DNA of 64,000 nt from Rhodosorus marinus CCMP1338. Taxonomy: Eukaryota; Plantae; Rhodophyta. Shown here in pieces: positions 8,134-52,763 of the stretch. Both the position numbers and the translations under genes were made by a program. Positions within the stretch are counted from its first letter, which is position 1; each line of letters opens with the position of its first letter. The DNA lies in NCBI GenBank assembly GCA_029953675.1, contig JAMWBK010000012.1:248001-312000 (forward strand), in the 5' to 3' direction. The notes beneath the pieces were generated by a model. That model saw nothing but the letters and a program-made list of their open reading frames with translations, was not told the DNA's origin and ran no database searches.

Positions 8134-8438
8134 TTTCACGTCTCCAACAGCCAACTGGGTATTACTCAAATTATTGAATATTTCGAGTTTTATTCCCCCC
8201 TAGTTACTCCCAAATTAGGTAATATATCCCAATTCTATCTTGTTCTTCTCTATATCTCCTTCTCTTCTCTCCAGCTAACCTGGGAAATATCGAGTTTGCC
8301 CATCGTACTTATACTCTTGCTCCATCGGGATGTGCAATAACTATTAAGCTCAAAAGGGTGTTGCACCTCCAGAGATTTTGGCACAGCCCGAGCATAATTT
8401 TGCATAGCCGGACATTGCTGGAAGGTGGAGACGTCACA
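8134..8438 (-). repeat. 3' LTR (TG...AA termini)
   Basis: Direct repeat of 13064-13368. Imperfect terminal inverted repeat TGTGACGTCTCC / GGAGACGTGAAA. Confidence 0.95.
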
Positions 8439-11400
8439 TCCCTCCCACCGAAGAAGAAGCGCGGGGTCGGGCAGATTCAGCAGCACGATGAAAGTTCATG
8501 TAGTAGCGAATTTGCCTTTTTGTAGCAGAGGTTTGTGGCAACTGGTGAGCTGCAATCCATCGAGCATCAGCTACTGTTTCCCCCTCGAAGTATACCATAT
8601 ATTCGCTGGTTCCCTCTGGTTTCATCCGATGACCAAGTACGGATGCGATTTCGCCTCCAGTCGCTGCTTCAGCTACCAACTCGGGTATGTCGGGTTGTAC
8701 GTTGTCGGGAGAACCGACAAATTTCCTCAGCAGGGAAACGTGGAACGTTGGATGTACCTTCATTTCGGTTGGTAACTGCAGGGTATAAGCGACATTGTTC
8801 ACCTTACGCTGGATTCTGAAGGGTCCGATGTATTGAGGTCTGAACGGTTTGGGATCTCGTAGCGGCAAGTTCGTGGTTGATAAGAGCACCATTTCGTCAG
8901 GGAAAAACTCAGGGTCACGCCTTCCCGCGTCGTAGCGGATTTTCTGTACTTGCTTTGCGTACAACATGTTGTTCCTTGCTGCCATGTATTGATCCTGCTG
9001 ATGTCGTAAAAGAACTTCGGCTGCCTCAGGTAAGGGAGAAACGATAGCCTCCTCTGCACGTGGTACTATTAATGTTCCCGGTAGCTCAGGGTTTCGTCCG
9101 TACAGAAGTTCGAAGGGCGAATACTTAGTAGATTCCGAGATTTGCGTGTTGTAGACCAACTCCGCCATGGAAAGATCTGCGGCCCATGTAGTTCGGGTAC
9201 TGTTGCATCGGAGGTATGTCTCCAACGTCTGATTGACTCGCTCCGTTTGTCCGTCCGTTTGCGGGTGATAGGCTGTACTCAAATTCGTTCTGACCTTAAG
9301 TATACCCATCAGTCGTTGCCAGAATAGGCTGGTGAACTTAGAATCCCGGTCTGAAATTATAGTTCGGGGTAATCCCGCGAACCGTACCCAGTGTTCGAAG
9401 AATAATTCTGCCGTTTTCGCCGCATCTGCGTCCGTCCGGGTTGGTATAAATTTCGAATATTTTGTGAACCGATCGACAATTACTAGGATTGCATCAGCTC
9501 CCGATGTAGTCATGGGAAGACTAACGATGAAATCCATAGTGATGTCCTGCAACTTTGTTTCTGGTACAGGTAGCGGCTGTAGAAATCCTTGTGATGCCCG
9601 GAGTGGTTTCTGCTTTTGGCAGATTTCGCACTTTCCAACCATTGATTGAACGTCATCCCTCATTGTACGCCACTAATAACGTCTCTTCAAAAGGTTGACT
9701 GTTTTATGGAGACCGAAATGTCCTCCCGTGGGTTCCTCATGATATCGCCGTAGTAAGTCCGGTACGAATTTCAGGGGCACACATACTCGATTGTGCCTGA
9801 AGAATATGTCTTGCTTCTTCCGGAACCCTTGTTCCACATATTTGTTAGCTTCCAGATGAATTGCTTCGAAGTCAGGGTCCTGTGCGTAGGCTTCCGACCA
9901 GTTTTCATAAGGTAGAACGCTGTACATCGCCAACTGGTTGATTGCTCCCCGGCTGAGTGGGTCCGCAATATTTTCCGCCCCTTTCTTGTATTCGATATTG
10001 AAGGAAAACGGCATTAAGCGATTCACGTATCTCGCTTGTCTCTTGTAAGCTCCTTTTGCGAATGTAGGAAACGCAAAGGGTTATGGTCGGTGCGAAGCCC
10101 AAATCGTTGGCCCTCGACGTACGTCCGCCAATGTAATACCGCTAGGGTTAACGCGTAGAGTTCCCGTTCATAAGTGGAATACTTCTCCTCCGTAGTGGTG
10201 AACCGCTGTGAGAAGTACGCAATTGGATGTTCTCCATCTTCAAAGGTTTGCAATAACACAGCCCCTACTCCCTTGTTACTGGCATCAGTACAAATTGTGA
10301 AGGTTTTTGTAAAATCCGGATTTCGTAGTACTGGCTGCTGCATCAATTTCTCCCGCAGGGTGTCAAATGCTTTCTGCTGCTCCGGTCCCCACAGAAATTC
10401 TACATTCTTCCTCGTGAGGTTGGTCAGGGGTGCTGCTACCAGGCTGAATCGTGGCACATAGTTACGGAGATAGCCCGTAAAACCCAAGAAGGACCTGACA
10501 TCGTGCACATTTTCTGGAACTTGCCAATTTTTAAGGGCGGCTACCTTGCTAGGATCCGGCCGTCGTCTCCCACTCCCAACCAGATGACCCAAATATTTCG
10601 TTTCCGGTACATCGAAGACGCACTTTGACCGCTTTGTATAGAGTTGGTGGTTTCTCAGCTTCGAGAAGACGATGTCTAGATGTCTTTTGTGGTCTTCCTT
10701 ATTCGCCGAGTAGATAATAATGTCGTCAAAGAAGATCATGACGAAAACGTTTAACTCGTTGAAGAAAATACTGTTCAATAGTCGAGTAAACACAGCAGGA
10801 GCATTTGTCAGTCCAAACGGCATCACTAACCACTCGTAAAGACCAAATGGCGTCGTGAACGCTGTTTTTGGAATGTCCTTCTTCTCCACGCGTAGTTGCC
10901 AGTAACCACTCCTCAAATCGATCACACTGAGATATGTGGCTTTGCCGAGAGCATCTAGACAATCGTCTATTCTTGGCGGGCTGGTCTTGTTGAGGATGGT
11001 TGCCTGGTTCAGTTTGCGGTAATCGATGCACAATCGCCGCCCACCATCTTTTTTTTCCACAAAAAGACAGGGTGAAGCAAAAGGCGACGAGCTAGGTCGA
11101 ACGAGGGTTTTGCTCAGCAAATCTTGTAGTTGAGTTTTCAGATCCTTCTGATCTGCAAGACTCATTCGGTATGGTCTTTGGGATGTTGGTTCAGTTCCCG
11201 GTTTCAGATCAATTGTAAAGTTGACGTTTCGCCAAGGGGCCAGGTTCTTAATGTCTTCCACAAAAACGTCAGCGTATTTATCCGTAATAAATTCCTCCAG
11301 ATCTTTCGCCTCTTCCAGTCGTTTTTGTGTAAATTTCGTTATATTTTTGATTTCGGGTTCCTCCGTATAATTTTCAGGTTCTGGGTGGTCAGGTTGTTCA

Positions 11401-12032
11401 GGTTCTACTTCAGGGTTTTGTTCAGGTTCTTCTTCACTGTAATTCACCGGGTTTTCAGGGTTGTGTTGAGGCTGAGTGACAAATTCTTCAGCTTCTTCTG
11501 GTTGATTTTCTGGTTCTTCAGGATTTTCTGGTTCTTCGGGATTTTCTGGTTCTTCGGGATTTTCTGGTTCTTCGGGATTTTCTGGTTCTTCGGGATTTTC
11601 TGGTTCTTCGGGATTTTCTGGTTCTTCAGGATTTTCTGGGTTATTTCCTTCGTTGGGGTTCAGTGTCAGCGTCTGGTTTGATAGATCGAGTTGCGCCTTA
11701 TATTTGTGGAGGAAATCACTTCCCAGATACCCTGGGCTTGTGGCGTCTTCTACAACGTAAGGTCGCCAGTTGAAGCTGTGACCGCCCAGTTGTAAGGTTA
11801 CCTTGGCTTCGCCCAAGATACTTATGGATGTGCCTGGCGAGGCCGTGTCCAATTTCCCGTGTTGGGTTGAGATAATTGGAGCAGCATCTGGAATACCTCT
11901 CAAAACAGAATGACTGCTGCCGGTATCAACTAAGAGAGAAATCTCTCGACCGTTGATCCGCCCAACTAGTGTCATATCTGCCGTCAATGGGATCGAGACG
12001 CCTGGATCGGCAACAGTGTCGGCGTGTGTCAC
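8434..12032 (-). pseudogene. pol: Pol (protease, RT, RNase H, integrase, chromodomain) with a 1-nt deletion near 10040 and an in-frame TAG at 9673-9675
   Basis: LVDTGSS protease; FFDDII RT; TDASNKGVGAVL and TDHNPL RNase H; H..GH..C..C zinc motif; MDFIV, SDRD and GQTERVN integrase; YIGPFRI GPY/F motif; EYMVYFEG..ARW chromodomain. Confidence 0.93.
11505..11640 (-). repeat. 18-bp coding tandem repeat (EEPENP)x7 between protease and RT
   Basis: Seven units of ttttctggttcttc(a/g)gga in the pol frame. Confidence 0.95.
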
Positions 12033-23654: not shown

Positions 23655-24200
23655 AATATGTACCGCGAACTTCGGCCTATGATACGGGAAACGTTGTCGG
23701 GAATTGAACGTGAGAAGCCCCTGCCTGTCGCAGACTACCAAAGTGATAATCGCCGCGTGGCTGACCTCGTGTCACCTGTGACGAAAGCCGCCGTACGACG
23801 TACGTTGATCTTGCTGTTCCTAATCCTCAGCGCCTCGTCGTTATTTGTCGGCTAGCGGGAGAGCGCCGCGGATTTGCCGCTGCCAGTATGAGACGTCGCA
23901 AAGAGTTGAAATATTTGGGGGCTTTGTCTTCCCCAGGCATTCGTGCTTCGGCTCTAGCTCATTGTCTGCTACCTCTGGTCATTGAGTGTTTTGGATTTAT
24001 GGATTCCGTTGGTTCTCGTTGGCTTCGGGAATTGTTCCGCGAACGCCCTGACCTTCTGTTCTCGTTTACCCGTTCTAAGTTTCTTGATGTGGCGTATGAA
24101 CGCTGTTTTGACGTCCGAGGGGCGCGACCTTCGCCGCGCATAGATTTTTTTCCCCCCCTCGGGCTTTTTTCTTTAAGTCTCCGATTAAACAAATTCATTC
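23655..24200 (+). mobile_element. Degenerate family A 3' fragment
   Basis: EREKPLPVADYQ..RRVADLV and LVIECFGFMDSVG; tail aaattcattcagattcag. Confidence 0.85.
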
Positions 24201-24739
24201 AGATTCAGAGTCGTACTACTGTAAGTTTAGCGGTGACAGTCATTCCAACGACGATCATGGCGCTGCCCCTTGCTTCGATGGCAGCGATGTCAATAATCGG
24301 GAGACAGAAAGCCGCTATGGCAATACCTTCTTTGGCAGTATGCTAGCGGAGACTTTTACCACTATCATCAACCAAACCAGTCAGAAAACCGTAAGGCTTA
24401 CCGTATATGCAGTCAATCTCCGCACGCTGGCCGTCGAGATGACGACGATTTTACAAAAGCACCTTAAAATCGACGTAGGGCGTAAAGCTAGCTTGGCATT
24501 AGGTACAGAAGCGTCAAGCCCTTTGGTAATAGTTATTGGCCACCTTGGTTGTCCGCACTCCGCGGCAATTCTGGTGCTTACTTGGTGGATAAATGTATCT
24601 CGTGTCGGAGAGATATGACCTGACCGAGTGTCACCAGCGCACTGCCTAACCCTGCTTAGTGAAACCATCAGCGAGAAGCGAGGCCTAACAGAACCCGTCC
24701 TTTAATTCTTAATTAGGGGAGAAACAAATTCATTAATTC

Positions 24740-25972
24740 ATTAGAGGAGGAACATGCGTGTTCGTTTAGACATTGCACTGATGTGTCTATAGTTCGTTTG
24801 AGTGGTCATGGTTCCCACCCGGCCAATAGGGTACCTGGTTACCTCGGTAGGATTCTTTCAGATACCTTCGTACGTGGCGTAAAACTATTTAGGGGAGGAG
24901 GGGAGAAACACGCGTGTTGGTTCGATCTTGCACTTGTGGGTTAATAGTTGGTGTGAAGGGTAATCGTTCCTACCTGGCCAGGAGGGTAAGAAAGAAGTTT
25001 ACAGAAGCCGGTTATCTAAAACCCAAGTAGAGAGGAAGCATACTTGTTGTGTTAGACCTTGCACTGATGGGTTTATAATTATGTGAATGGTGATCGTCCC
25101 TACCTGGTCAGGAGGGGACGCAGAACCCGGTTGCGTCGAAAACCTAATTGGAGGAGAAACATACATACTGATTTAGAACTTGCACTGATGCGTTTATAGT
25201 TGGTGTGACTGGTAATCGTCCCTACCTGGCCAGGAGGGCAAGAAAGAGGTTTACACATCCCGTAGTGCAGATGCTAGTTATAGGAGAAACATGCGCGTTG
25301 GCTTAGATATTGCACTGATGGGTTTACAGTTGGTGTGAATGGTAATTGTCCCTACCTGGCCAAGAGGACACCTGGTAACAACAATACACGTACAGACAGC
25401 TTCTTCCGGGTCGAATCCCTAGTTAGAGGAGAATTATGCGTTGGTTTAGACGTTGCACTGATGGGTTTATTAGATGAAGATGTGAATGGTAATGGTCCCT
25501 ACCTGAGGACGAGGGCAAACGGACAACGCGGAAGCGTGGCTTATACAGGACAAGCCGTCGAAACACTCGAAATCTGAGCACCCTGGGCGACAGAACCCGG
25601 TTGCGTCGAGAACCTAATTAGAGGAGAAACATATGTATTGATTTAGAATTTGCACTGATGCGTTTATAGTTGGTGTGAATGGTAATCATCCCTACCTGGC
25701 CAGAAGGGCAAGAAAGAGGTTTACACATCCCGTAGTGCAGATGCTAGTTATAGGAGAAACATGCGCGTTGGCTTAGATATATCACTGATGGGTTTACAGT
25801 TGGTGTGAATGGTAATTGTCCCTACCTGGCCAAGAGGACACCTGGTAACAACAATACACGTACAGACAGCTTCTTCCGGGTCGAATCCCTAGTTAGAGGA
25901 GAATTATGCGTTGGTTTAGACGTTGCACTGATGGGTTTATTAGATGAAGATGTGAATGGTAATGGTCCCTAC
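24740..25972 (-). repeat. Array of nine homologous ~80-nt introns or intron relics separated by micro-exons; includes a 470-bp duplication
   Basis: Conserved GTAGGGA..ATTACCA.TCACACCAACT.TAAAC.CATCAGTGCAA..TCTAA..TTTCTCCT.TAA(C/T)TAG units. Confidence 0.85.
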
Positions 25973-28402
25973 CTGAGGACGAGGGCAAACGGACAACGCG
26001 GAAGCGTGGCTTATACAGGACAAGCCGTTGAAGCACTCAAAATCTGAGCACTCTCGGCAAATACATTCTCCCTCACCATTCACGACAAGCTCCTACAGTT
26101 GAGACGGACGGACGAGTTGTGAGGTGGGTACAGAGGCGCAATGGCTTGAAATGGTTTCCTACATTCGTCGGTGGGCAAGAAACACTCGCAACATCCGTTC
26201 CGCAGATGCCATTGTAGATACATTTCCCTTCCGTGGGTGCGCACTCACACGTGCATGTGTCAGCGTCCGGGTCTAGAGTCTACTCCAAAGTTGATGAGTC
26301 GGGTGTTTAGCCATTGAACTATTGGTTTGTGTGGATGATTCTGGATTTTACCTCTCCGGTAGCGCAGGTAGCTACGAAATCACTGATTTCGTTGCAGGTT
26401 TGACTATCACTGTTGAAGCATTGCGAGTTTGAGCACTTTCGGCAAGTACACTCTCCCTTATCATTCACGGCAACTTCCTGAGGATTAGCACAGGGAGAGA
26501 GGTGTGAGAGACGAGTTGTGAGGTGGGTACAGAGGCGCAATGGCTTGAAATGGTTTCCTACATTCGTCGGTGGGCAAGAAACACTCGCAACATCCGTTCC
26601 GCAGATACCATTGTAGATACATTTCCCTTCCGTGGGTGCGCACTCACACGTGCATGTGTCAGCGTCCGGGTCTAGAGTCTACTCCAAAGTTGATGAGTCG
26701 GGTGTTTAGCCATTGAACTATTGGTTTGTGTGGATGATTCTGGATTTTACCTCTCCGGTAGCGCAGGTAGCTACGAAATCACTGATTTCGTTGCAAGTTT
26801 GACTATCACTGTTGAAGCATTGCGAGTTTGAGCACTTTCGGCAAGTACACTCTCCCTTATCATTCACGGCAACTTCCTGAGGATTGGAACAGGGAGAGAG
26901 GTGTGAGAGACGAGTTGTGAGGTGGGTACGGAGGCGCAATGGCTTGAAATGGTTTCCTACATTCGTCGGTGGGCAAGAAACACTCGCAACATCCGTTCCG
27001 CAGATACCATTGTAGATACATTTCCCTTCCGTGGGTGCGCACTCACACGTGCATGTGTCAGCGTCCGGGTCTAGAGTCTACTCCAAAGTTGATGAGTCGG
27101 GTGTTTAGCCATTGAACTATTGGTTTGTGTGGATGATTCTGGATTTTACCTCTCCGGTAGCGCAGGTAGCTACGAAATCACTAATTTCGTCGCAGGTTTG
27201 ACTATCACTGTTGAAGCATTGCGAGTTTGAGCACTTTCGGCAAGTACACTCTCCCTTATCATTCACGGCAACTTCCTGAGGATTGGAACAGGGAGAGAGG
27301 TGTGAGAGACGAGTTGTGAGGTGGGTACAGAGGCGCAATGGCTTGAAATGGTTTCCTACATTCGTCGGTGGGCAAGAAACACTCGCAACATCCGTTCCGC
27401 AGATACTATTATGGACACATTTCCCTTCCGTGGGTGCGCACTCACACGTGCATGTGTCAGCGTCCGGGTCTAGAGTCTACTCCAAAGTTGATGAGTCGGG
27501 TGTTTAGCCATTGAAGTATTGGTTTGTGTGGATGATTCTGGATTTTACCTCTCCGGCAGCGCAGGTAGCTACGAAATCACTAATTTCGGCGCAGGTTTGA
27601 CTATCACTGTTGAAGCATTGCGAGTTTGAGCACTTTCGGCAAGTACACTCTCCCTTATCATTCACGGCAACTTCCTGGGGATTGGAACAGGGAGAGAGGT
27701 GTGAGGAGGTTGGAAGGGATAGCTGAGATAATTTCCTTCTAACCAAACCTCCGTTGGACGACAGTTCAGTGCCGCCGATGAGGCTGGACTCCCGATGGTA
27801 AGGCAGTCAGAACCAATCCTGCAAGTGTCAGAGGGGCACGCCGGTGTGCACTCGAGTTCGACAGTGCACGCGAATTGAAACGCTTTCCCGGGTCTCAATT
27901 GTCGACAATTGAAATCTGAGGCCAGCCATCCTCGCCTTAGCGAGTTGGACTGATTTATCCCGAATACGGCGTATCCGACGACCTCAAAATCGCTATCACA
28001 ACACGAAGCCGTGTCAATCGATGCGATCCTTGTAGGGCAAGTGTCTATCCTTGCCTTTGTAACCGTTTCTCCGTCTCGGAAGTCCCTCCTCTTCGTGAAT
28101 CTCTTCGTGCTGAATGGAATCGAATCGCCCTTGACCCAGATTCCCGTTCTCAGTTTGACGATCGTGAACGGATCATGCGCATTAAAATTCATCCGAAAGC
28201 AAGTGCTCTTTGTTGGCCTCATGCGTTGGACGGCCTCCAGAGTTGCATTGCCCATCACGTTCCCTGCGAAATCTCTCAGAGTGAAGGTCCGAATCTGCAC
28301 ATCAAAGCTCTTAAACGCCTCCTCACCAGCACACGTGCCGGTTCCGGGAGCCCCCAGAACTGCCACCAGCAACAAACACCATACTAGGCCGATTTTACTC
28401 AT
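25108..28402 (-). CDS. 16-exon secreted Cys-rich protein (~704 aa): N-terminal conserved domain plus tandem Cys-rich micro-exon modules
   Basis: Exons 28402-27749, 27674-27549, 27476-27360, 27275-27150, 27077-26961, 26876-26751, 26678-26562, 26477-26352, 26279-26163, 26092-25973, 25888-25826, 25743-25696, 25613-25503, 25418-25356, 25273-25226 and 25143-25108 (TGA). All introns are GT-AG, 70-84 nt and phase 0, and the joined frame stays open. Confidence 0.8.
26163..27674 (-). repeat. 399-bp tandem repeat x4 (126-nt exon, 72-nt intron, 117-nt exon, 84-nt intron)
   Basis: Near-identical units with exact 399-bp period. Confidence 0.95.
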
Positions 28403-31289: not shown

Positions 31290-31560
31290 AGTGTTCAACA
31301 TGATTGATTGATTCGACATTGTGAAAGCGATTTTGAGCTCTTAGGATACGCTCTGGTTCAAGTCATGCAGCCAGGCTCGATGCCTAGGCAAGCATGGTTG
31401 AGCGCATTGTTCAATTGCCTTGAGGTGGACGAGAACAAACCGTTCCAATAAGCCTGCACCGTGGAAACCCAATGTGCGGTCTCACCGGTCTGCCCCTCTG
31501 AGACATGCAGGATCGGTTCTGAGTGCTTCCCGACCGCAAACGCAAAGTCAGAACTGAATC
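31290..31560 (+). pseudogene. Decayed paralogue of exon 1 of the 25108-28402 gene
   Basis: CESDFELLGYAL..AWLSALFNC..NKPFQ*ACTVE..CPSETCRIGSEC..GPAE|gtatgt aligns with CDSDFEVVGYAV..GWLASDFNC..GKAFQFACTVE..CPSDTCRIGSDC..RPTE|gtttgg, with the same donor position. Confidence 0.75.
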
Positions 31561-32744
31561 GCGGTCCAGCAGAGGTATGTCTTGGCTCAGACCACCCCAC
31601 TGCCACTCTCCTAGTTCGTAACAACTCCTGCCGTATCTTAATCCGTAGTAAGTTGTTATGAGTGATTCAGCGCAATGTGGTTGCCAAGAAAGCTCACCCT
31701 CGTAGTGTTTCGACAGTGAGCGATGCATCGAAGGTGCCAATTTCGAATTTGGTTGCCCTTCTGGCCAGGTAACCACTACAACCATCCACTCCAAACAGAG
31801 ATCCATCAGTCCGATGGCCAAGCGTACGCACCGTCCTTCTTTACGTAGACTGTAGACCGCAAGGCTGAGCTCTGCGCGTGTGAATGCTCAGTCACTGCCG
31901 AGCGATGTATCTTTGAAGGCATCTGCAGAAACGCCTCTAGTGTTATCTGCCCGCTGAGAACCGTAAGCAAAAAGATATGTAACGCTCGCGCTCTCCAATC
32001 TCTTAGCGCCTCCTTCATTTACCTCAATTCCCAGGAACTCGCAGTGAATGATGATGGTGAATGTCATTGCCGAGAGTGTTCAAGCTCGCAGTGCCTCTAT
32101 GAAGAGCGATGCGTAGAAGGTGTCGAGTACGAAGCGGTGTTGGCCAGGTACGACTTTGAACATCTGCAACGAAAAGAGATCCATCACTACACTGCCTAAA
32201 TGTACGAATCATCATCCTGTGAGTAGTTCGTAAATGGCGACAGTGTTCTCTGCCCATGCGAAGCTTGCTCCAGCTCGGAGTACTTAGCAGACGGCCAATC
32301 CGTCGACGCTGAAAAATTCGGGGCTGATTCTTTTCTGCCATATACCCGAGGTAGCGAACATAATCAGCCACACAGGCCACGAATACAGCAGCCCAATTGC
32401 TGAACGTACGCACAACCCTCCCTCTTTCAATAGATTGTAGATCCGGACAATCCGTTCTGCACGTGTGGGTGCATTGCATTTATCGGCTCAGAACCCCCCT
32501 TGCCTACGGGGCTATGCTCCCTCGATGGGGATTGTGTTTTGATGCTCTGGCGGAGTAAGAAAACGACATGGCACTGCACTGAAACTTTGCAAGTTCTTAG
32601 CAGCTCCTTCTTTCTCTCAATCTCCAGCCTGATTCACAAGGAGATGTTGAAGTGAACGATGCGGGAAAATGTACGTGCGGGCGAACTAAGGGGACTCCGG
32701 TCAGACGCTAAAAAATCAGCCGAAGGGAGGAAAAACCCCCTCTA

Positions 32745-33420
32745 AGTGTCTCTCTGTGGCGATATTCTAGCAGCATGCTTGCCGAGGCGCGCCATCGGCG
32801 CCTGGGTTTTCAGATTTCCCTACCTAGTTCTTAGTTCCTTTTCACGCCTTGCGTAGCGCTTCAGGCTAATAAAGCCAATAAAACCAGTAAAAACCAGTAA
32901 AACCACCATCCTATCGTACGACAAGCCGGTCTTGAAATTGAACGTGAGAAGCCCCTGCCTGTCGCAGACTACCAAAATGATGAACGCCGTGTGGCTGACC
33001 TCGTGGTCACCAGTGATGATAGCCGCTGTACGATGTACGTTGATCTTGCTGTTCCTAATCCTCAGGCTAGTCGCTATTTGCCAGCTGCGGGAGAGCGCCA
33101 CGGATTTGCCGCTGCCAGTAGGAGACGTCGAAAAGAGTTGAAATATGCGGGGGCTTTGTCTTCCCCAGGCACTCGTGCTTCGGCTCTGGGTCATCCCCTG
33201 GTACCTCTGGTCATTGAGTGCTTTTGGTTTATGGATTCCGTTGGTTCTCGCTGGCTTCAGGAATTGTTCAGTGAACGCCCTGACCGTCTGTCCTTGTTGT
33301 TTACGCGATTAATTTCGCTGTGGTCTATGAACGCTGCTTTGATGTTGGAGGCACGAGATCTTCGCCTCGCTTTTCTCCTCTCGGGGTATTTCTTTTAGTC
33401 TCGGATTAAACGAATGCGTT
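32745..33420 (+). mobile_element. Family B 3' fragment (32745-32910) followed directly by a family A 3' fragment (32915-33420)
   Basis: B terminus with (AGTAAAACC) tail, then ORF 32991-33398 family A RLE. Confidence 0.85.
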
Positions 33421-35219: not shown

Positions 35220-35590
35220 CTATCCAATGGAGATTCGACTTTGATGTTTTTTACTTAATATCCAGTTGTGTTTTGTGCAGTAAATGTCCGCTATGAGAAG
35301 AACAGCCGTTGGGGCAACTCTCCCTGGATAAAATGCGTTGTGCCGCGGTCGTTTTCAATCGGACTAGGGCGATTGTCTTCAGAGACTGCGGCATGGCTAC
35401 AATCTATCTATCCAATGGAGGATTCAACTTGGATATTGTTGGTGGAAGTAAATACTTTATATCCAATAAGTGACCGCTATGAGAAGAAAAGCCGTTGGGA
35501 CAACTCTCCCAGGATAAAGTGCGTTGTGCAGCGGGGGTCGTTTTCAATGGGAGTCCAACGATTGTCTTCAGAGGCTGCGCCATGGGTATA
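35220..35590. repeat. Diverged tandem duplication, period ~187 bp
   Basis: ctatccaatgga..ccgctatgagaagaa.agccgttggg.caactctccc.ggataaa.tgcgttgtgc..ggtcgttttcaat occurs twice. Confidence 0.75.
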
Positions 35591-35720
35591 TAGCGTAGTG
35601 GTCTGTAAACAGGGGGGGATGGTGGAGGAGGAACTGGCTGAAGGATAGCAGCACTTGCTGATTCGATCGTGACTTTCTTGTTCGTGAACGAAGTGTTGGG
35701 GAGGGAAGGGATTGTGTGAG

Positions 35721-36311
35721 ATGATGAGAGTTGTCGCGTTAGCTGTGTTTAGCCTGGCTCTGCTGGGTATGGCGAGGTCCGCAAGAGTAACATGCGCTGC
35801 TTCGCCGGCGTTCGCGAGATTTGAATATGCAGACGCTGACTTCCTTTTTACAGCGCCTTTGAAATCGACGAACGGAACGGAGTATGGAACTGTCACTTTG
35901 GCCGTGAATGTGAGGCAAAACGTGAACTGTTTTGCGGCGACATTTCGAACGCGGACAGCAGCGATCGGTCTCCTGAGGCTCAGGGTAGGAATTTTCGGGG
36001 CATTGGAGGACGCTCCTACTGGCAAAGACAGGTTCACGAGGAGAAAGCGAGTTGCCAAGGTCGGAGAAGCGGTGACAGTTACTAAGGCCGGCTTGAACAT
36101 CTGTCCATCAAGTATCATAGTGGACGATCCTTTTCTTTGCTGTCAACGGCCCAATTTGGACTTATACGCAACTGCCCTGATCAGCACGGGTTCCAAGGTT
36201 CTGCGAGTGTATATGAGAAGCGCAGACGCAGATCCGTCATGCAGAACGCCGAACCCGGGAAAGCCGTTCCGACAGGTCTGCACTCTACCTGTTACCTGCT
36301 TGCAGAACTGA
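35721..36311 (+). CDS. Secreted single-domain protein (196 aa), paralogue of the exon-1 domain of the 25108-28402 gene
   Basis: Signal peptide MMRVVALAVFSLALLGMARSA; shared TC..F..F, G..TL, CF, LR.GI, RFT.R, VTKA...CP, CC, CR...PGK.F...CT...C pattern. Confidence 0.82.
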   Translation: MMRVVALAVFSLALLGMARSARVTCAASPAFARFEYADADFLFTAPLKSTNGTEYGTVTLAVNVRQNVNCFAATFRTRTAAIGLLRLRVGIFGALEDAPTGKDRFTRRKRVAKVGEAVTVTKAGLNICPSSIIVDDPFLCCQRPNLDLYATALISTGSKVLRVYMRSADADPSCRTPNPGKPFRQVCTLPVTCLQN

Positions 36312-36659
36312 GCTAGTGCTTCTAATTACATAGTTCATTTCGTCGATACGGCATTCAGTTTACTCCGCAAGCCGAATGCACTTTGAGAGGTTCTTTTTCA
36401 GAAATAGTAAAAGATTTTCTCGTTCATTCAAGTTTTGTTTACCTCGAAAGTTCAACGGCTTGTCAGTGAGTTTGAGCCCAACCATCTATATATCCGTTTA
36501 TCTTCCTTTCCATCTCTCAGAGCTTCCCGTCCTGATCAATGAAAAAAATCCACGACTTGCATTGGTGTTCTTAGCTCATTAGTGAACGAAGTAAAAATGT
36601 CAAAGCTAACCTTCGCATACAAAAAGCCTTGGTTCTACACACGTGCCTGAAAGACATTC

Positions 36660-37295
36660 TGAGCGAACACTTGACAAGAGTTGGCTCGTGGTCGAGATCG
36701 ACTCGGCACTGCCTCGAATATCCTCCGCAAACACCGCTCCTCGTTGCATAGCAGATCTCCTGGTATCGGACGCAGCCCCCAGACGCTCAGCATGTGCGGT
36801 TAGTGGGACCTAAAGCGCTACGCAAGGCGTGAAAAGGAACTAAGAACTAGGTAGAGAAGCGTTCAAACCCATGTCGACGCTCAGCATATGTTGACCTCGC
36901 GATTACATGCCCAGTGGCGAGCGCCCATCTCACGGCTGCCGCCCGCCGCCGAGGGGCAGCCGCTTCGGCTCTTCGACGAGTGAAGGAACGACGGTATGCT
37001 GAGAGCATGGCCAGTCTGCCCTACGCCGAGGGTCACTCCCACCGGTTCCAGCCTTTCATTGTGGAAAGCTTTGGTCATTTGGATAAGTCGGGTTTAGAGT
37101 AGTTGCGGAAATGTTTCGCTGAGCATCCTACTGAGTACTTGGCGCCTTTACGGCGCTTCAGTGCCGCCCTGTGGCGATATTCTAGCAGCATGTTTGCCGA
37201 GGCGCGCCATCGGCGCCTGAGTTTGCACGCTTCCCTCCCTAGTTCTTAGTTTCTTTTCACGCCTTGCGTAGCGCTTCAGCCAGTCCAGTAAAGCC
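36660..37295 (+). mobile_element. Family B 3' fragment containing a nested antisense B mini-insertion (about 36794-36875)
   Basis: Nested B terminus flanked by GACGCTCAGCAT at 36782-36793 and 36876-36887. Confidence 0.8.
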
Positions 37296-37304
37296 CTATG
37301 CTAG

Positions 37305-39420
37305 TAGGCGTCGAGGATTGGGGTTTTGTTTCTTTTTCGGTCGCGAGCGTGTTCGTTTACGGGAAGCGCTTCCTCCGGTACGCCTTCCCCTCGATTTTCC
37401 GCGGGGCGTCGTTTGCATTTGCAACTACTTCTGTCTTCCGGGTGGGTGTGTTGCGGGGCCTTTCCTATTTGGGTTGGGTTTGGTCGATTATTCTCTCGGT
37501 GCGGTTTCATATTGGTGGTGCAACGTTTCCTTTGCGCATTCCCTCAGGATGGTACGGATATCTCCGCGCTCGACGGAGCCTCCTCCCAAGGAGGCACTGC
37601 CAGGTGGGGGACTCCGTGTTCGCCTCAGCTGCGGCACCTTTTCTGCCGAGGTTGACTTGGAAGGCGCTTCCGGCACCCAGGCGCGTGCACTTATCTCCGC
37701 TGTCACCAGCCTGATCACGGCTGCGAGTGATCGTGGAGTGCTCCCTCAGCTCACCCAGAAGCTAGGTGGGCTGGAATCGGGATTGCTGGCCAGGTCAAAT
37801 TCAAATTCGGACGAGAATTTGAATTGCGCCAGAGTGGCAGCGTTGGCTGAAGGCAGTCAACATCAGGTCAATCAACATGAACCTGTCCCGGGACAGGCGA
37901 GGGCTGTTGCTTCTGCGCGGGACAGTACGACGTTGGGGAGCGGCAGGCCGGGCCAAAACGCGCTTCAGCGCTCGGGGACTCGAGGCAATGGTGGTGGTGA
38001 CTGTGCGGCAACCGGTGTGGAGGAGACTGCAGCTGTGGACTTCCCTCTCTTGGACCAGCCCTCAGGTGGTCACCAGCTCCCGGCTACTGCGGGGGCACGT
38101 GGTGGCCGCAAGGGGGGCGCTTCGTACGCCTCAGTCTTGCGGCAGGGCACCACTGCCACACGTACGGCGGCTAAGCTCCGTTTCCTACCATCTCGCGAGC
38201 CTCAGGATGGACCTGTGGAGACCACTCTCCAATTTCTGTGGGTGCGAAATGTCCGGCCCCAGACTACACGAGGCCAGGTTCCGTCTATGCGAGACTTCCG
38301 GGACACTTTTGCGGAATCGTTAGGGTGCAGCTGGGGTGATTTCTTCTTCGCAAACTATGAGGGCCGCGATGTGCTGTTTTTGGTCTCCGAAACCGCCGCC
38401 AAGTACCTGGAGGCCTTGCTGGCGAAGCCTACCGAGCAGTGGCCTGAGACCGCCCGGTGGCTGCGCTGCAACCCGCAGGTGGTTTTGCACTTCGATTTTG
38501 ACCGTTTCTCGGGCAATTTCCTGTCTCCGGGAGAAACGGCAGGGCTCTCTGAGCATGAGAGCAGCGTGAAGGCGGCAGCGATCCATTGGCTACGGATTCA
38601 GCGCCTTGAGAGGATCTTGTTGGAGAGCTTCCGGTCGGGCCCTCGTCACCTGCGCATGGCGGTGTCCAGCTTCTTCGATCTGGAGAGGCGACTTGTGCTG
38701 ACTTCGCGCTACAAGACAGAGCTGCAGCGGTTGGGGATTTTGGAGGGCTCTGCTTCCAGCACCACTTCCAGCGAGAGTGGTGAGGCAGGGGAGCAGACTG
38801 AGGGCATGGCGGTGGAGGACGCCCAGGTTACTTTGCTGAAGCCCGCGGGATCCGTTCCGCGAGCCTCGCGGAGTGGGCGGCTCACGAATTTGGTGCGGAT
38901 AGGAGGTAAGAGAGCGAGGACCGACTCCCCCGGGTCTAAGGGGGAGAAGCACGATTAGCGCTCCAGGCACGGCTGCGAGGTCGCAGCCTATAGATCTACA
39001 GTCTTATGTCCTGAAGAAGGGCGGAGACTGGGGCATTTGGCGTACGCGTTTTCGGAGTTGGCTCCGGAGGTGGATTTCTTTGGAAGAAGGTTGGCTTCCC
39101 CTCCGTGGGGGCATTCCCCCAGTCGTCCTCCCTCGTGGAGACCTTCTAGTAGCTGAAACCATTCTCGATTTCATCTTCACGAGCCTGGCTCGTAACATTC
39201 GGGACACAGTCATTTGGGTTTTTCTGGGGGTCATGCCGCGCCTGATTCTGGCCCCCATTCACACATCGGAGCGCAGATGGCGAGTACGAGACCGACTGGC
39301 CCTGTTCTTGAAGGGAGACTTCGAAGTACTACAGCGCAGCTATTTGGCGTCGGCAGCACCATCCGCCCGTCGGACTCGGCATGGCACAGTGTCGCCCGTG
39401 CCGGCTCGAGTACAGAAATT
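37305..39420 (+). mobile_element. 5' half of a family B element: 5' UTR, ORF1 and start of ORF2
   Basis: 39255-39418 matches the 5' ends of the B copies at 58710-58881 and 45300-45454 (RWRVRDRLALFLK.DFEVLQRSYL). Confidence 0.85.
37549..38958 (+). CDS. Family B ORF1 (~469 aa), no recognisable CCHC knuckle, possible RRM-like segment
   Basis: Open frame from ATG (MVRISPRSTE) to TAG, upstream of the RT/RLE frame; basic C-terminal NLS-like IGGKRARTDSP. Confidence 0.65.
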   Translation: MVRISPRSTEPPPKEALPGGGLRVRLSCGTFSAEVDLEGASGTQARALISAVTSLITAASDRGVLPQLTQKLGGLESGLLARSNSNSDENLNCARVAALAEGSQHQVNQHEPVPGQARAVASARDSTTLGSGRPGQNALQRSGTRGNGGGDCAATGVEETAAVDFPLLDQPSGGHQLPATAGARGGRKGGASYASVLRQGTTATRTAAKLRFLPSREPQDGPVETTLQFLWVRNVRPQTTRGQVPSMRDFRDTFAESLGCSWGDFFFANYEGRDVLFLVSETAAKYLEALLAKPTEQWPETARWLRCNPQVVLHFDFDRFSGNFLSPGETAGLSEHESSVKAAAIHWLRIQRLERILLESFRSGPRHLRMAVSSFFDLERRLVLTSRYKTELQRLGILEGSASSTTSSESGEAGEQTEGMAVEDAQVTLLKPAGSVPRASRSGRLTNLVRIGGKRARTDSPGSKGEKHD

Positions 39421-41961
39421 GCACACGCACTGCAATCTTTGCTCGCTCTGAATACCGAAACACTAAAGCGGCGGTGGGATTCAAGAAAAGCGGCCGACGA
39501 GGGCCTCATGTCGATCGTGGCACGTCTTCCTCAGGGCAAGAGCCCAGGTCCTAGCGGTCTCCGAGCGGAACACCTCCAAGGTGCAACTCAACAGACGCAA
39601 GTGGCGTTGATTCGTGTATTGCGACAACTGGCGACCGCTCCTGAGAAATTTTCCCCGGCTCTGACCCGCGCCCTTCGCAGTAGTCGACTCCTGCCGTTCA
39701 CGAAGCCTAACAAGGGTTCAGTGCCGCAGGAGCATCCCGGAGTTCGCCCTATCGGAGTACCAGAAGTTTTGCGCAAGGTAGCAACGCAATGGACTCTTCA
39801 CGCGGTTATGGACAGGGTGCGTGAGCTGCTGGTGCCCTTACAACTGGGTATCGGAGTAAGTGGCGGGTGCGAACGCTCACTTCACGCGATCCAGGCCCAT
39901 TTGTCATGCGAACCCGATTCGGTGGTCCTTCGCCTAGACCTTGAGAATGCCTTTAATCGCATCGACGGACGCCTTGCCAAGCAACTGGTGGACGAACACT
40001 TGCCGGAGCTTGCACCAGCGTATAGACTTGGCTATGGAAGCGACAACGCGGACTCACCGACGCTCTGTGGCTGGCGATCTTCCCCTGGACAGAACGAAAC
40101 CGACACCTCTCGCCTGACTCTCCAAGCAACTACAGGAGTCCAACAGGGAGATCCACTGGGGCCGGTGCTACATGCACTATCCCTGGCGCCCTTTCTAAGA
40201 GCGTTGCGTGCTAAGTTCCCCAACGAAACGATTGTTGCTATCCACGACGATATCACGATTGTCGGGTCGCTACAAGCCGTGAAGGCGTCCCTGGCATGGG
40301 CAAAAACTGTGCTCCCCTCTCTTGGAGCACGCCTGCAACTCGGCAAGTGCACTGTGTACGGGCGAACACTGACTACCACGCGAGTGGTCAACCATGAGAT
40401 TCCTGGAGTGCAAGTGACCAGAGACGGAGTCACCATCCACTCGATACCGATAGGCAGCCGAGAATATATCGAACAGGAGTGCCGGGGGTTGCACAATAAG
40501 CATGAGAAACTCTTTGAGGAAATTGCCAAGCTCCCACAACCGGAGCTTACGACGCAAATTGCCCTCTTCAGGTTCTGTGCAGAAACGCGACTAGACTATG
40601 TGCTACGATGCCTCGCATACGAGTTTGGAAGAAATCTGGCACGCGAGGCGGACGTGATGACCAGATATCACCTTGAAATTCTATTCGGAGGCCTCGCTAC
40701 GACAGCTGTAGAGGACGATGAGTACGCAGAGCTGATCTCGGACCAAATCGCTCTGCCCTGCCGCTGGGGAGGTTTGGGTTTCGCTACTCGAAAGCGCGTC
40801 CAACCCATCGCGTTTTACTCGTCATGAAGAAACACCTTCCGGAACAATGAAGATGAATGGCCATACCTGACTGAACTAGAGCGGGAGGTTACGGCAGAAC
40901 GCTCACCAGACACATACGAGCCGATGGATCAACGATGGTCGACTGCACAGCTGGCGGACCAGATCTGTGCATCGTCGCGAGCAATACAACGGAGGCTCGG
41001 ACCAGAAACCCCGCCGCGGATCTTGGCACTGACTACCCTGCAACAACCGCGAGAAACATCTCTTCGAAGCGCCCCGGGCGAGACTGCAGCTTGGAATAAT
41101 GGTTCAATAGAACAAACCCTCTCTCGAGAGGCACACCATTGTGCATTCCAAAAGCTGGTCACCAACCCACGAATCTCCCCTGAAAACCGAGCTCGAATAC
41201 GGTCTGCCGCGGGATCCGGGTCGGGAGTCTGGCTACGTGAAATACCAACGCTGACACCGAAAAAATTGAGTGCGGTTGAGATTCAGGTAAACGTTCGACA
41301 ACTGCTGGGTCTGCCAATTCCGGGATTGCGCACCACCGAGAAGTGCACTAGTTGCCGGAGTAAACACGGAAGGACTGGGGTACAACGGTTTCATCACTGC
41401 CCAACATCAACTGGACTGTGGCAACGTAGGCATGACGAAATCTGCAGAGAGCTGGCACGGTGGCTAAGGCGATGGAACTTCATGGACGTAGAGCAAGAAC
41501 CTGAGGGGTACTTCGAGAACTACGGACTGCGACCTGATATCGTTGCTAGGCATCCGAGGACCAAACAAAGGTATGCGCTGGATGTAACGGTGGTGTCACC
41601 ATTACAGGGAAAATATTTGCGGCGGAGCCAAGATGATAGCGGATACGCGGCGAGAGCTGCGGAGAAGTGGAAAATCGCTCACTACAAAGAAGCGATGGTG
41701 ATGGAGAAACCGGATGATAAGTTCATCCCGATAGCGATAGAGACGTTTGGGCGTACGGGGCAAATGGCACAAGAGTTCCTCCGCGACAGCTGCAAACACC
41801 TACTGCACAGGAGTGAGGAGCTGAGAGACGTGAGATCCCAGATAAACCGGCAACTATGGCGAGGTAACGCAGAGATAGCATTAGGCGCTTTGCGCGTGGA
41901 CCAGCTGGAGAATCCGCTGGTGCCTGTTTTTTCTTTTGAACGTAGCATGAGACCCCGGTAG
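39421..41961 (+). mobile_element. 5'-truncated family C element: RT, zinc knuckle and RLE in one frame with a single TGA (40825-40827, W position)
   Basis: KSPGPSGLR, RPIGVPE, QLGIGVSGGCE, LDLENAFN, GVQQGDPLGP, AIHDD, CTSC..HHC, RH, LRPDIV..LDVTV..K..Y..PIAIETFG. Confidence 0.92.
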
Positions 41962-42152
41962 CGGGGTTCCAGTAAGTTTCTCCCTATATAGGATTAGACG
42001 TAGTGTTGCGCTGCAGTAGGCAGCTGCCCAGTAAAGCTTACGGTTACCCCTTGCTCTTGCGTAGCCAGACCTCTCCCTGGCTTACTTCGTTGCAACCAGG
42101 CCCTGATGGTTTCGTTCGGTCCGGCTGCAAACCGTGCGCCAACATATATGCA

Positions 42153-42357
42153 AGCAAATGTACGGAGTTAATAGTTACCTATATCGTTTATTAGATTCAA
42201 TACTACCCTTGTTTTAGCCTCTGAGGGCTACCAGAGCAGGACTACCAGTCATCCATCACTCCAACTGGCTTTCACCGTCTTCGACCCAAAACCTAAAAGG
42301 CGAGCAAATATACTGAGTTAATAGCTATCTATATCGTTTATTAGATTCAATACTACC
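42153..42357. repeat. 55-bp direct repeat (period 150) downstream of family C
   Basis: agcaaat.tac.gagttaatag.ta.ctatatcgtttattagattcaatactacc at 42153-42207 and 42303-42357. Confidence 0.8.
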
Positions 42358-42639
42358 ATTGGTTTTATGAAAACAATGATTCTTCACCGACTTCGTAAAT
42401 TGAGGTGATGTAAATTGACTGAGATATGGATTGATTACTTTCGTTTTTTTTTGAAGCGCGATATTCATTTTATCGCTGGTTATATATCGTTTATCAGATT
42501 CGATAACCACGTTTTGTTTTTCTATAAAACTTTTTCTTGACGGGGATTCGTCTGTTGCGGTGATATAAACTTGCTGATGACGTCCTGACTGATTACTAAT
42601 AAAGCCAGTATCATGCTTACTGACAGGAGTTGACATTAC

Positions 42640-51900: not shown

Positions 51901-52763
51901 GCTGCGCCCTTGCCACCGGGTCCTCCAGGACCTCCCGGACCTCCTGGTCCAGGCTCGCCAGCCTGGTACAGATTACAGCGTTCGTAGTGCCCAAACGGCC
52001 CTTTACAGTATTTGCAGCAGTTTGGATCTTTGGATGTACCGAAGCTCGTTCTATGGAATGCGCAGCTTACTCCTGCAGCTCCCACACCGCCGATCTGTCC
52101 GGGTCCACCTTTGCCACCGATCGACCCGGCGCTCCCATCGTTCATGATAGTGAAATCGTACCCTCCAGAGTGAAGCGAGGTGAGGTTGAGGTGTTTGGTG
52201 ATCATAATCAAATTACCACCAGAGTTTCCATCCGTTCCGGTACCTCCTGGAGCGCCACCAATACCAGAGGCTCCTTGACGCCCGGAGAAACGCGGCTGGG
52301 GGCCCGGTGTCGGCTTCGCAGATGGCACCGCCGGAGGAGGGACATCAACCGGCGTGCCACTCATGTCCAAAGAGAAGGATCCATCGGTCTGGATATCGAT
52401 GATCGATGCAAGGAGGTACAGTGATGTGCCCCTAATGTTTGCGCTGACCCCCGCCTTTCCCTTGATCATAATATAGAACCCGTAGATCTCAACTAATTTG
52501 CTGCCTCCGAATAACGCCGTAGTGTCCGTCTCATTCTGAGAAAAGTCGAGCATATAAAAGTACGGCGTGTAGATCGTCAGCGTGTTCTGTGATTCCGTTT
52601 TAACCAGTTCTTGCCTCTCATCCACGGCCATAGCACATATTTCATCAGATAACCCCCACCCAACACATGCTTCATTCACCGCACCATCTTTGTGCGCTCT
52701 TGCGTACAGGCATACCCACATGGATGCCACTGCCGCCCACAAAACACTCTTGTAAATCTTCAT
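48957..52763 (-). CDS. Secreted 1268-aa protein: Gly-rich/collagen-like N-terminus, long helical core with hydrophobic hairpin, beta-rich C-terminus (toxin-like)
   Basis: Uninterrupted ORF with signal peptide; GxxGxxG blocks; heptad-like helices around VMNFVSFVTGVADLGFAATKL; ISPFSNYQI..VDNVRVYYTG near the C-terminus. Confidence 0.88.
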   Translation of the reverse strand: MKIYKSVLWAAVASMWVCLYARAHKDGAVNEACVGWGLSDEICAMAVDERQELVKTESQNTLTIYTPYFYMLDFSQNETDTTALFGGSKLVEIYGFYIMIKGKAGVSANIRGTSLYLLASIIDIQTDGSFSLDMSGTPVDVPPPAVPSAKPTPGPQPRFSGRQGASGIGGAPGGTGTDGNSGGNLIMITKHLNLTSLHSGGYDFTIMNDGSAGSIGGKGGPGQIGGVGAAGVSCAFHRTSFGTSKDPNCCKYCKGPFGHYERCNLYQAGEPGPGGPGGPGGPGGKGAAPGWVSVYSNSANGAGNKPIDNDTVKGLILSTSKFGAVGVGGPGGDGGAGAINDPNALCTTYSKAEPFTMFYKGMYAVKPVGTPGLQGPTGVNGTTFGYQRATFIRATVNSTGNPGDANHYEKPHDWAYQDFPAPVEYLGFGLELSANMLSSLAFIDDDAGAQNTYNLILQSVSDMMYSAQLMMNLTADHTTQKLYASYVNKAWTLIRSINQVSSPSGSPLGQVSVASFDQQLDDLAEFRDFAEVVEGYYEEYAKQVNDRETSEKILLNATKSSLVGVEQQTTLQGQIYKSLAKMNQTLDDVALKIQMTKYALNEDQEELNHCWEEAQKIVMFKNVMNFVSFVTGVADLGFAATKLVGEASQFISDGGKFFDGINLAVDNKFSNIPAFMNNIAKLVPGPGQSSDWDPYASSMKLISNDETTVDGYQGGLQSALQGIYHADNYADALVIYQKMNQTADDYKTARINMARSEVTSKVNAMKAACPGQAQNFFRSFDTLQMWVNQRNDLLAVYSALVVYYNRVTAKKLYLDNIAQNTLTELQQNATNPASLAVLNVHQETYNMLVEQFSKNLGLVLNARSYLMMGATNSSLSALSFASCRWETSIMKASDNMFFKCAADAVLELKNALAYWHTNTYSNNQLVDWRSYWGPIDLDEESVGADRWADFKKTGILSFCMDPTEPSFNKGPGLSAGMFFPLVSMDSIFVVMDGAPAEGGVRVDIQHQASAGVVRAMENPTSTDAEHPYLTKKFTHADRDLRFIYTGEAPADDQVSVLAWMKSTNISVRADMGDPSKILRISPFSNYQIQTDAGILQTVDNVRVYYTGHYVPAKDFNILPISSLSEPIMCASTVGKAMATPTPTTSPPDADRSAGAATNKCKSYSVSVELVKGYVSQDGSHTKACRISFEHPLEGRRPEQIRLEWEWEKYRDDTDWEYNNAVSMAINAAKAIVTFNGTPEEGDGTAQAVLLTDTCPTNVRVVSTYPLCL

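Follow-up and report, generated by a model that had tools for sequence, protein, structure and literature searches.

Introns more alike than the exons between them in the cysteine-rich gene NDN08_004874 of Rhodosorus marinus: a probable product of nested tandem module duplication

The 64,000-nt stretch of DNA analysed here, called the window, comes from contig JAMWBK010000012.1 of the unicellular red alga Rhodosorus marinus CCMP1338 (assembly GCA_029953675.1, positions 248,001 to 312,000). On its minus strand, from 25972 to 24737, nine related GT..AG units of ~82 nt alternate with short cysteine-containing spacers. This array is the 3′ third of a real gene, NDN08_004874, which encodes a predicted secreted cysteine-rich protein. 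Judged by their sequence, the units would be spliceosomal (U2-type) introns, the splicing of NDN08_004874 itself being predicted. The array probably arose by nested tandem duplications of exon–intron modules whose junctions fell inside exons. An original prediction, made from the letters of the window alone, had already taken the units for introns and the spacers for in-frame, Cys-containing micro-exons of a modular secreted protein, a reading supported by the gene model, the public annotation and the cDNA of a homologue. The two explanations that it offered for the array, diversifying selection with intron homogenisation and an introner-like unit, fared less well and are weighed below.

The nine minus-strand units, the spacer lengths and the in-frame translations quoted in that prediction are all present. 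A profile of the unit (nhmmer) recovered exactly nine copies (E 1e-18 to 1e-25) together with a tenth, a 3′-end fragment at 24735-24711, and the window contains two core motifs of the unit 9 and 8 times, compared with 0.13 and 0.00 expected from shuffles, with every occurrence confined to the array. Eight units open with GTAGG(G/A)A and the ninth with GTGGGA, each donor lying at the higher coordinate of its unit in Table 1. I1 to I8 end in TAG after a TTTCTCCTC-type tract, and I9 has no AG where the family-consensus acceptor should be. The six upstream units measure 84, 82, 82, 84, 82 and 82 nt; all six had been said to end in TAA(C/T)TAG, which is true of five, the sixth (I6) ending in CAATTAG. 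The branch-site-like TCTAA, which had been placed ~30 nt upstream of the acceptor, has been lost from I8 and is present in the other eight units, lying 28-30 nt from the 3′ end in seven of them and 37 nt in I7. Only the six upstream units had been counted as intact, but units 7 and 8 also possess usable acceptors (TTTTAG at 25016 and AAATAG at 24885), both of which are spliced in the public annotation. Splicing is probable for units 1 to 8, unit 9 having lost both splice sites. The base composition of units and spacers differs as well, the units holding 11-17% G and ~33% A and the spacers 27% G and 15% A. Past unit 9, at 24735-24688 on the minus strand, stand a duplicated intron 3′-end fragment, GTTTCTCCCCTAATTAAG, and an exon-head remnant, GGACGGGTTCTGT; therefore, the ancestral array reached beyond nine units.

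The spliced product of the gene corresponds to KAJ8901012.1 (P0001; locus tag NDN08_004874), which is identical to the gene model built here as far as exon E111, and the annotated C-terminal peptides were placed at 25399-24861. The gene model contains 15-17 introns, every one of them in phase 0, with an open frame and a regular Cys pattern. Exon 1 encodes a signal peptide and an N-terminal domain (N-domain), which AlphaFold2 folds as a beta-sandwich with a pLDDT of 73 and which gave only generic beta-sandwich matches. No match to this domain below E 0.01 was found in the PDB, and no Pfam family was found at an E of 0.1 for this product or at an E of 10 for five other members of the family. The names “pherophorin” and “DOMON”, under which the domain appears in the source, could not be reproduced. 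The product of exon 1 is 54% identical to a cDNA product, P0004. Four tandem 399-nt units follow. In each, a 126-nt A exon and a 117-nt B exon are separated by a 72-nt intron, and the B exon is followed by a second intron of 84 nt (70 nt in the final unit); both exons carry six cysteines. The six-cysteine modules are thus encoded one to each phase-0 exon. The protein is 704-728 aa long and is drawn mostly from exons of 111-654 nt, and it also includes four to six symmetric exons of 39-63 nt. Because the model includes a signal peptide but lacks a membrane anchor, the label “surface” protein is an assumption. The protein family has 35 representatives among 1.84 billion proteins, and successive short modules are not seen in any other member. 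A second gene on the plus strand of the array was considered and rejected, as no meaningful open reading frame (ORF) was found there.

Removal of the introns from the array leaves an open frame that keeps the Cys pattern across all junctions, and the public model splices the same sites. A polyadenylated homologue cDNA (L001, product P0004) has its module junctions exactly at the predicted intron positions. Furthermore, transcripts 6960, 6961 and 6962 of another homologue remove or retain an 81-nt intron after ...CCTCCTGGCCAG/GTAAC, a donor (CPPGQ/GT) equivalent to those of the array. The next intron of this second homologue, which starts with GTAGGGA, is likewise removed or retained, both introns being removed in 6960 and 6961. 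No transcripts of NDN08_004874 were found in the collections examined, where its protein forms a cluster of 1. The three isoforms of the homologue differ by intron retention, not by exon skipping. Skipping of any array exon would keep the frame, and no evidence for skipping was found, the sole transcripts being those of a homologue. Splicing of short introns proceeds by intron definition, under which retention is more to be expected than skipping. In the red alga Galdieria, intron retention is the main reported mode of alternative splicing (PMC5880011).

The spacers of 120, 63, 48, 111, 63 and 48 nt are all in phase 0, in frame and Cys-containing, the micro-exons having one to three cysteines as against six in the full modules. 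Most can be traced to parts of the full modules. Over its nt 4-66, E120 shares 81% identity with the A exon of the 399-nt units; E63 resembles the B exon (xxDPxxxxCTC) in its head, and for E48 the match is to the final ~47 nt of a B-type exon (27/38 nt). E111 is a chimera, in which an E40-type head (22/23 over the first 23 nt) is joined to the tail of E120 from nt 34 on (80/86). The module-8 exon is an older copy of the E48 type, and the module-9 exon one of the E63 type. Therefore, the different “exon types” are different remnants or fusions of module exons, each accompanied by a copy of the same intron.

A recent 470-nt tandem duplication accounts for the near-identical pairs I1 = I4, I2 ~ I5 and I3 ~ I6. 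When it is set aside, introns of different modules share 70-83% ungapped identity, or 68-82% with gaps counted as mismatches (z 9-15). Exons of different types share 43-54% with gaps (z 0.7-5.8), and exons of the same type 62-73%. The original observation that introns are more alike than exons therefore persists once the duplication is removed, with one exception: E48 and the module-8 exon are 73% identical, and their introns, I3 and I8, 72%. The likeness of the introns runs over the whole length (78-83% between different modules, 68-84% by quarter) and is not limited to splice signals. The likeness of the exons is confined to the last ~18 nt (66%) and, mostly, the first ~9 nt, G(T/G)(T/A)T(T/C)CGAC, and the 18 nt upstream of the exon tail show identity at the random level (27%). 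Generic resemblance of splice signals was considered as a source of the intron likeness and rejected: the other introns of the same gene (72, 74 and 84 nt) align with the family only over the first ~15 nt, and the likeness is therefore not a general property of R. marinus introns.

Within recent copies the asymmetry disappears. Between the two copies of the 470-nt duplication, the introns differ at 9/248 positions (3.6%) and the exons at 7/220 (3.2%), with a nonsynonymous:synonymous ratio of 5:2. Among the 399-nt units, the introns differ at 4/156 (2.6%) and the exons at 10/243 (4.1%), with a ratio of 6:4. In both sets, then, introns and exons are equally diverged, with no acceleration of the exons and no protection of the introns. 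The head-to-tail copies span exon and intron together with similar divergence in both, which is the pattern of tandem module duplication.

The mechanism of recombination and the order of events, as inferred from these observations, would be as follows. The repeat would consist of an ordinary ~82-nt intron flanked by the last ~18 nt of the preceding exon (CPxGQ) and the first ~9 nt of the next (xFD/xLD), and the spacers would correspond to the central parts of module exons that are short, truncated or chimeric. The array would have grown by unequal or illegitimate recombination with breakpoints inside exons, of which the junctions that kept the frame survived. Each duplication would have copied the same intron and joined it to a different exon remnant, giving exons of mixed origin, with heads of A or B type or a B-type tail, and in-frame indels in the inter-cysteine loop would have added further differences. 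The greater likeness of the introns would follow from the common descent of all nine from a single intron, whose fairly recent amplification was followed by drift.

Several points weigh against this account. Even in their alignable parts, exon types share 43-54% identity as against 78-82% for introns, an excess that plain co-duplication does not predict, so that the chimeric origin of the exons and indels in the loops have to be invoked. That chimeric origin is directly shown for E111 only. E63 is 62% identical to the relic of its own type, and their introns are 74% identical. Adjacent functional introns are 80-82% alike as against 72-76% for introns that share an exon type, a contrast that gene conversion could produce, although it lies within sampling error for 82 nt. 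In addition, the difference counts in the recent duplicates are small, the support for splicing of NDN08_004874 consists of sequence and homologue transcripts, and the search for other copies covered ~105 kb of a 31-Mb genome.

Some of the same numbers would be expected under concerted evolution combined with diversifying selection, in which gene conversion would unify introns and exon ends, selection would drive the exon middles apart, and a variable secreted or surface protein would result. Besides the gap in identity between introns and exon types, the sharp end of conservation ~18 nt upstream of the donor fits this explanation, as does the marginally greater likeness of the neighbours I1-I3 than of introns sharing an exon type. 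The gene also sits in a transposon-rich region beside decayed paralogues, a setting typical of fast-evolving families. However, the two recent duplicate sets show equal rates for introns and exons, and their nonsynonymous:synonymous ratios fit neutrality or mild constraint. I3 and I6 differ at 7/82 positions, and therefore no homogenisation has taken place since the duplication. Conservation of E48 and the module-8 exon equals that of their own introns, and the exons differ chiefly in length and chimeric make-up, not by substitutions. Diversifying selection with homogenised introns is thus considered unlikely, and nested module duplication remains the preferred reading.

Copies of the unit outside the array were sought in the window and in 41 kb of two other contigs (L004 and L005, the loci of distant paralogues). 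The array intron profile found no copy in the rest of the window (~60 kb) nor in L004/L005, and two pattern scans of the JGI contig collection, which includes Rhodosorus transcriptomes, yielded none in the first case and one chance match, in an unrelated metagenome, in the second. An inverted-repeat search revealed no terminal inverted repeats bounding the unit, and no target-site duplications were seen; the flanks of the unit are homologous exon ends, not duplicated target sites. A borderline profile match at 31769-31848 on the plus strand led to a decayed paralogue at 31320-32700, in which the C-terminal half of the N-domain is followed by modules, in-frame stops occur near 31449 and 31704, and the end is cut off at ~32700 by a transposon end. 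Outside the array, the nearest relatives of its intron are two introns of this paralogue, at 31769-31848 and 32351-32433. For three introns placed after exons ending in CPxGQ, two of them in this pseudogene and one in a transcript of the homologue, the array profile showed a weak, specific resemblance, outscoring 300/300, 299/300 and 297/300 shuffled decoys, and no relation to introns at other positions was found in the decoy test. On sequence grounds, the family has the look of an inter-module intron that was inherited vertically and then multiplied locally, and not of an introner, because its relatives are same-position introns in paralogues and its copies, in the DNA examined, are confined to the array.

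An introner-like origin would have a cassette, made of the CPxGQ tail and the intron, insert into coding sequence and create introns, with I2, for example, splitting a B exon into E63 and E48. Taken in order, the B-head exon E63 and the B-tail exon E48 run roughly colinear with the 117-nt B exon, PLGQ and I2 lying between them, and the conserved unit takes in exon sequence on either side of the intron. R. marinus is moreover intron-rich for a red alga, the CCMP1338 genome of 31.2 Mb having 24,821 introns in 8,392 genes (PMC10250338). The same colinearity, however, arises if, of two duplicated B modules, one underwent an internal deletion and the other a 5′ truncation. With no copy found outside the array in the DNA and collection searched, no terminal inverted repeats or target-site duplications seen, and distant relatives occupying, in paralogues, the equivalent phase-0 position behind CPxGQ, as vertical descent predicts, this origin is decidedly improbable. 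Introners in red algae were also not reported in the literature searched. A version restricted to the gene itself is judged quite unlikely: the CPxGQ tail and the ~82-nt intron would act as an intragenic intron-creating cassette or, in a weaker form, the eight near-identical phase-0 introns would pair any donor with any acceptor downstream of it to give in-frame secreted isoforms. I2 may be a recent intron gain, by copy-and-insert or by template switching from a neighbouring module. Should copies be present in unrelated genes elsewhere, they would constitute the first introner-like family in a red alga.

A core sequence, (G/A)A(T/C)CCATCA(G/C)T, recurs in introns after CPxGQ exons, at 31800-31811 and 32178-32189 of the window, at ~900-910 of L002 and in the array introns. 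The CCATCA(G/C)T core, kept in otherwise diverged introns of paralogues, could be an intronic splicing signal. Its recurrence at the same position, and the conservation over the whole intron, would also suit an intron that carries a functional element, for example an intronic small RNA, a regulatory site or sequences whose pairing regulates splicing or makes it mutually exclusive. However, RNAalifold gave no consensus structure for the introns, with two invariant pairs only and no covariation, and single-sequence folds gave z-scores of −0.3 to +1.8, six of seven being positive; on neither strand was folding more stable than in shuffles. No match to Rfam was obtained for the array introns at an E of 1 or below. 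Moreover, the decayed I9, which lies beyond the coding region, is about as conserved as the spliced units, which fits shared ancestry rather than constraint. A functional element as the cause of the conservation is highly improbable.

At the 3′ end, the reading frame meets an in-frame TGA at 25110-25108 in E40, where a CCCC run at 25117-25114 stands in place of the CCC of sister exons; with canonical acceptors, the protein as assembled therefore ends at 704 aa. Without one C, E40 is a 39-nt in-frame exon, VFDATGFCVPPDQ, and the annotated C-terminus then follows. The public model avoids this stop through an internal acceptor at 25400/25399 in the second E63, reads three exons (~44 codons) out of frame, which destroys the Cys pattern, and is back in frame for ...PPDQ/ITGFCKLLSYPPGQ/FYATYEGI and the stop codon. 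The CCMP1338 assembly was made from Nanopore reads with Pilon polishing by short reads, and its annotation, including the public NDN08_004874 model, by BRAKER2 with RNA-seq hints (PMC10250338). In module 8 (25023-24974), the family acceptor TTAG has become TTGG, and a 42-nt in-frame exon results from an AG that arose 7 nt downstream, combined with the loss of 2 nt. This shift of the acceptor with the deletion is an apparent compensatory rescue of the frame, suggesting selection on translation through the region. Because of this, the extra C in E40 would be either a very recent mutation or a homopolymer error of the Nanopore-based assembly. The public gene model thus probably contains an error, caused by a homopolymer frameshift in the assembly or by a real, recent frameshift that the predictor bypassed.

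The state of this 3′ end could also mean that the micro-exon tail is a decaying and largely non-functional appendix, the working protein ending with the full six-Cys modules and the array being tolerated junk through which the gene predictor found a path. The low cysteine content of the micro-exons, the broken frame of E40 as assembled, the reliance of the annotation on an odd internal acceptor that scrambles the Cys pattern, the neutral look of the substitutions in recent copies and the lack of micro-modules in every other family member all agree with this possibility. It is nevertheless improbable, as six, and probably eight, successive exons are in phase 0 with intact splice sites, unit 9 being the one that lost both, and the compensated loss of the module-8 acceptor points to translational selection.

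Tandem duplication of exon modules is known from EGF-like repeat proteins, the 54-bp exons of collagen and the super-repeats of titin and nebulin. NDN08_004874 resembles such modular proteins in having one module per symmetric exon and introns copied with the exons, in the near-identity of recent copies in both exon and intron (the 399-nt and 470-nt repeats), and in the change of copy number by unequal recombination. In contrast to animal EGF modules, which are classically of phase 1-1, the array introns are in phase 0. Several junctions fall within exons here, leaving chimeric exons of 39-63 nt, and the host is a unicellular red alga with a tiny, lineage-restricted protein family, both of which set the gene apart from those systems. 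Conotoxin-type genes have conserved introns and signal regions around a hypervariable Cys-rich exon, and, as in NDN08_004874, their non-coding or flanking parts are more alike than the Cys-rich coding part. However, in conotoxins this contrast lies between paralogous genes and comes with positive selection on the mature peptide, whereas here it lies within one gene with no acceleration of the exons. Dscam-type clusters consist of mutually exclusive exons with conserved intronic selector sequences. The array shares with them tandem, alternative-looking exons that each adjoin conserved intronic sequence, but no docking or selector complementarity and no conserved pairing were found in it, its exons differ in length and type, and its short introns favour splicing by intron definition.

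The array also shares features with introners (of Micromonas, pelagophytes, dinoflagellates and fungi), which are near-identical short introns with complete splice signals. Introners, however, exist in hundreds to thousands of copies in unrelated genes, whereas the units here form one array of one gene in the DNA examined, and the array intron, unlike introners, has same-position relatives in paralogues. The micro-exon genes (MEGs) of Schistosoma have short, symmetric exons of 3-81 bp (bioRxiv 10.1101/2023.06.21.545858). NDN08_004874 is like them in its predicted secreted product, its short symmetric exons (39-63 nt) and its frame-safe skipping. MEG introns are long (up to 5 kb) and do not form a repeated family, in contrast to the near-identical ~82-nt introns here. 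In addition, variation by alternative splicing is documented for MEGs, whereas NDN08_004874 is only partly micro-exonic and no exon skipping was seen.

Table 1. Coordinates in the window of NDN08_004874, of the exons, introns and duplications of its array, and of two neighbouring paralogues
Feature	Coordinates	Strand	Basis
NDN08_004874, start codon to annotated stop	24858-28402	-	protein match, own gene model
Exon 1, 654 nt: signal peptide and ~190-aa beta-sandwich N-domain	27749-28402	-	ORF, AlphaFold2
Four tandem 399-nt units, 98-99% identity	26093-27674	-	repeat search, gene model
Recent 470-nt tandem duplication: two copies, 96% identical, both breakpoints inside exons	25121-26058	-	repeat search
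E120, full A-type six-Cys exon (ELVVNGEGECIC...CPRPQ)	25973-26092	-	translation, alignment
Intron I1, 84 nt, GTAGGGA...TAACTAG	25889-25972	-	motif, model, profile
E63 micro-exon (GFDPEEAVCTCIVVTRCPLGQ), B-type head and CPxGQ tail	25826-25888	-	translation, alignment
Intron I2, 82 nt	25744-25825	-	motif, model, profile
E48 micro-exon (HLHYGMCKPLSCPSGQ)	25696-25743	-	translation, alignment
Intron I3, 82 nt	25614-25695	-	motif, model, profile
E111, chimeric exon at junction of 470-nt duplication	25503-25613	-	alignment
Intron I4, identical to I1	25419-25502	-	alignment
Second E63 copy, identical to first	25356-25418	-	alignment
Intron I5, 97.6% identical to I2	25274-25355	-	alignment
Second E48 copy, one nonsynonymous difference	25226-25273	-	alignment
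Intron I6, 91.5% identical to I3, ends CAATTAG	25144-25225	-	alignment
E40, 40-nt exon	25104-25143	-	model, alignment
Intron I7, 88 nt; acceptor TTAG to TTGG, new acceptor TTTTAG 7 nt downstream	25016-25103	-	alignment
Module-8 exon, 42 nt (ITGFCKLLSYPPGQ), E48 type (35/48 identity with gaps)	24974-25015	-	annotation, alignment
Intron I8, 89 nt, GTAGGAA...AAATAG, without TCTAA	24885-24973	-	annotation, motif
Decayed E63-type exon; terminal codons FYATYEGI, stop at 24860-24858	24819-24884	-	annotation, alignment
Unit 9, decayed intron copy, GTGGGA...TAATGAA, in 3′ untranslated region or downstream DNA	24737-24818	-	motif, profile
Tenth-unit fragment (intron 3′ end), then exon-head remnant	24709-24735	-	repeat family, profile
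Decayed, 5′-truncated, unannotated paralogue; alternating A/B exons, phase-0 introns of 72-83 nt	31320-32700	+	borderline profile match, alignment
N-domain-only paralogue P0061, 196 aa	35721-36311	+	ORF, alignment

The paralogue P0061 has neither Cys-rich modules nor introns, and the relative in L005 likewise lacks modules. P0061 (window 35477-41961) and P0065 (L004 9778-13884), both with the N-domain only and located on different contigs, have similar upstream DNA, and each is followed within ~1 kb by the same reverse-transcriptase retroelement in the same orientation. Gene and element were either duplicated together, or the gene travels with the element. A retroelement family encoding an RVT_1 reverse transcriptase, and with it a conserved C-terminal ORF (...CPLCSQ/CQGCE...YVDLA...), is present in many full or partial copies, at 1458-2090, 18371-20239, 20776-21252, 23888-24346, 32991-33398, 37264-47686 and 56074-58842, and its terminal motif, ctaagaactaggtagggaagcg, recurs at ~29040, 29220, 32820, 36840 and 37240. 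A further retrotransposon at 8434-12817 on the minus strand is Ty3/gypsy-like by eye, with the ORF order gag, protease-RT-RNase H (RT, reverse transcriptase), integrase and a run of PENPEE repeats in its polyprotein. Two other minus-strand ORFs have a signal-peptide-like start. The one at 61547-62995 continues with long Pro/Thr/Ala/Glu-rich repeats and a C-terminal Hint (hedgehog/intein-type) module (Pfam E 1.6e-28). The other, at 48957-52763, is an intron-less ORF of 1268 aa with a Gly/Pro-rich, collagen-like stretch and no significant Pfam family.

As a case, NDN08_004874 is instructive but ordinary. The growth and decay of a modular cysteine-rich gene can be read from it cleanly and dated, with duplications of three ages, a chimeric exon caught at a duplication junction, and a lost acceptor rescued with the frame restored. 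It also illustrates that introns more conserved than exons can stem from duplication history, not selection. Thus, genome scans and introner searches call for caution, as tandem intragenic copies must be told apart from dispersed ones.

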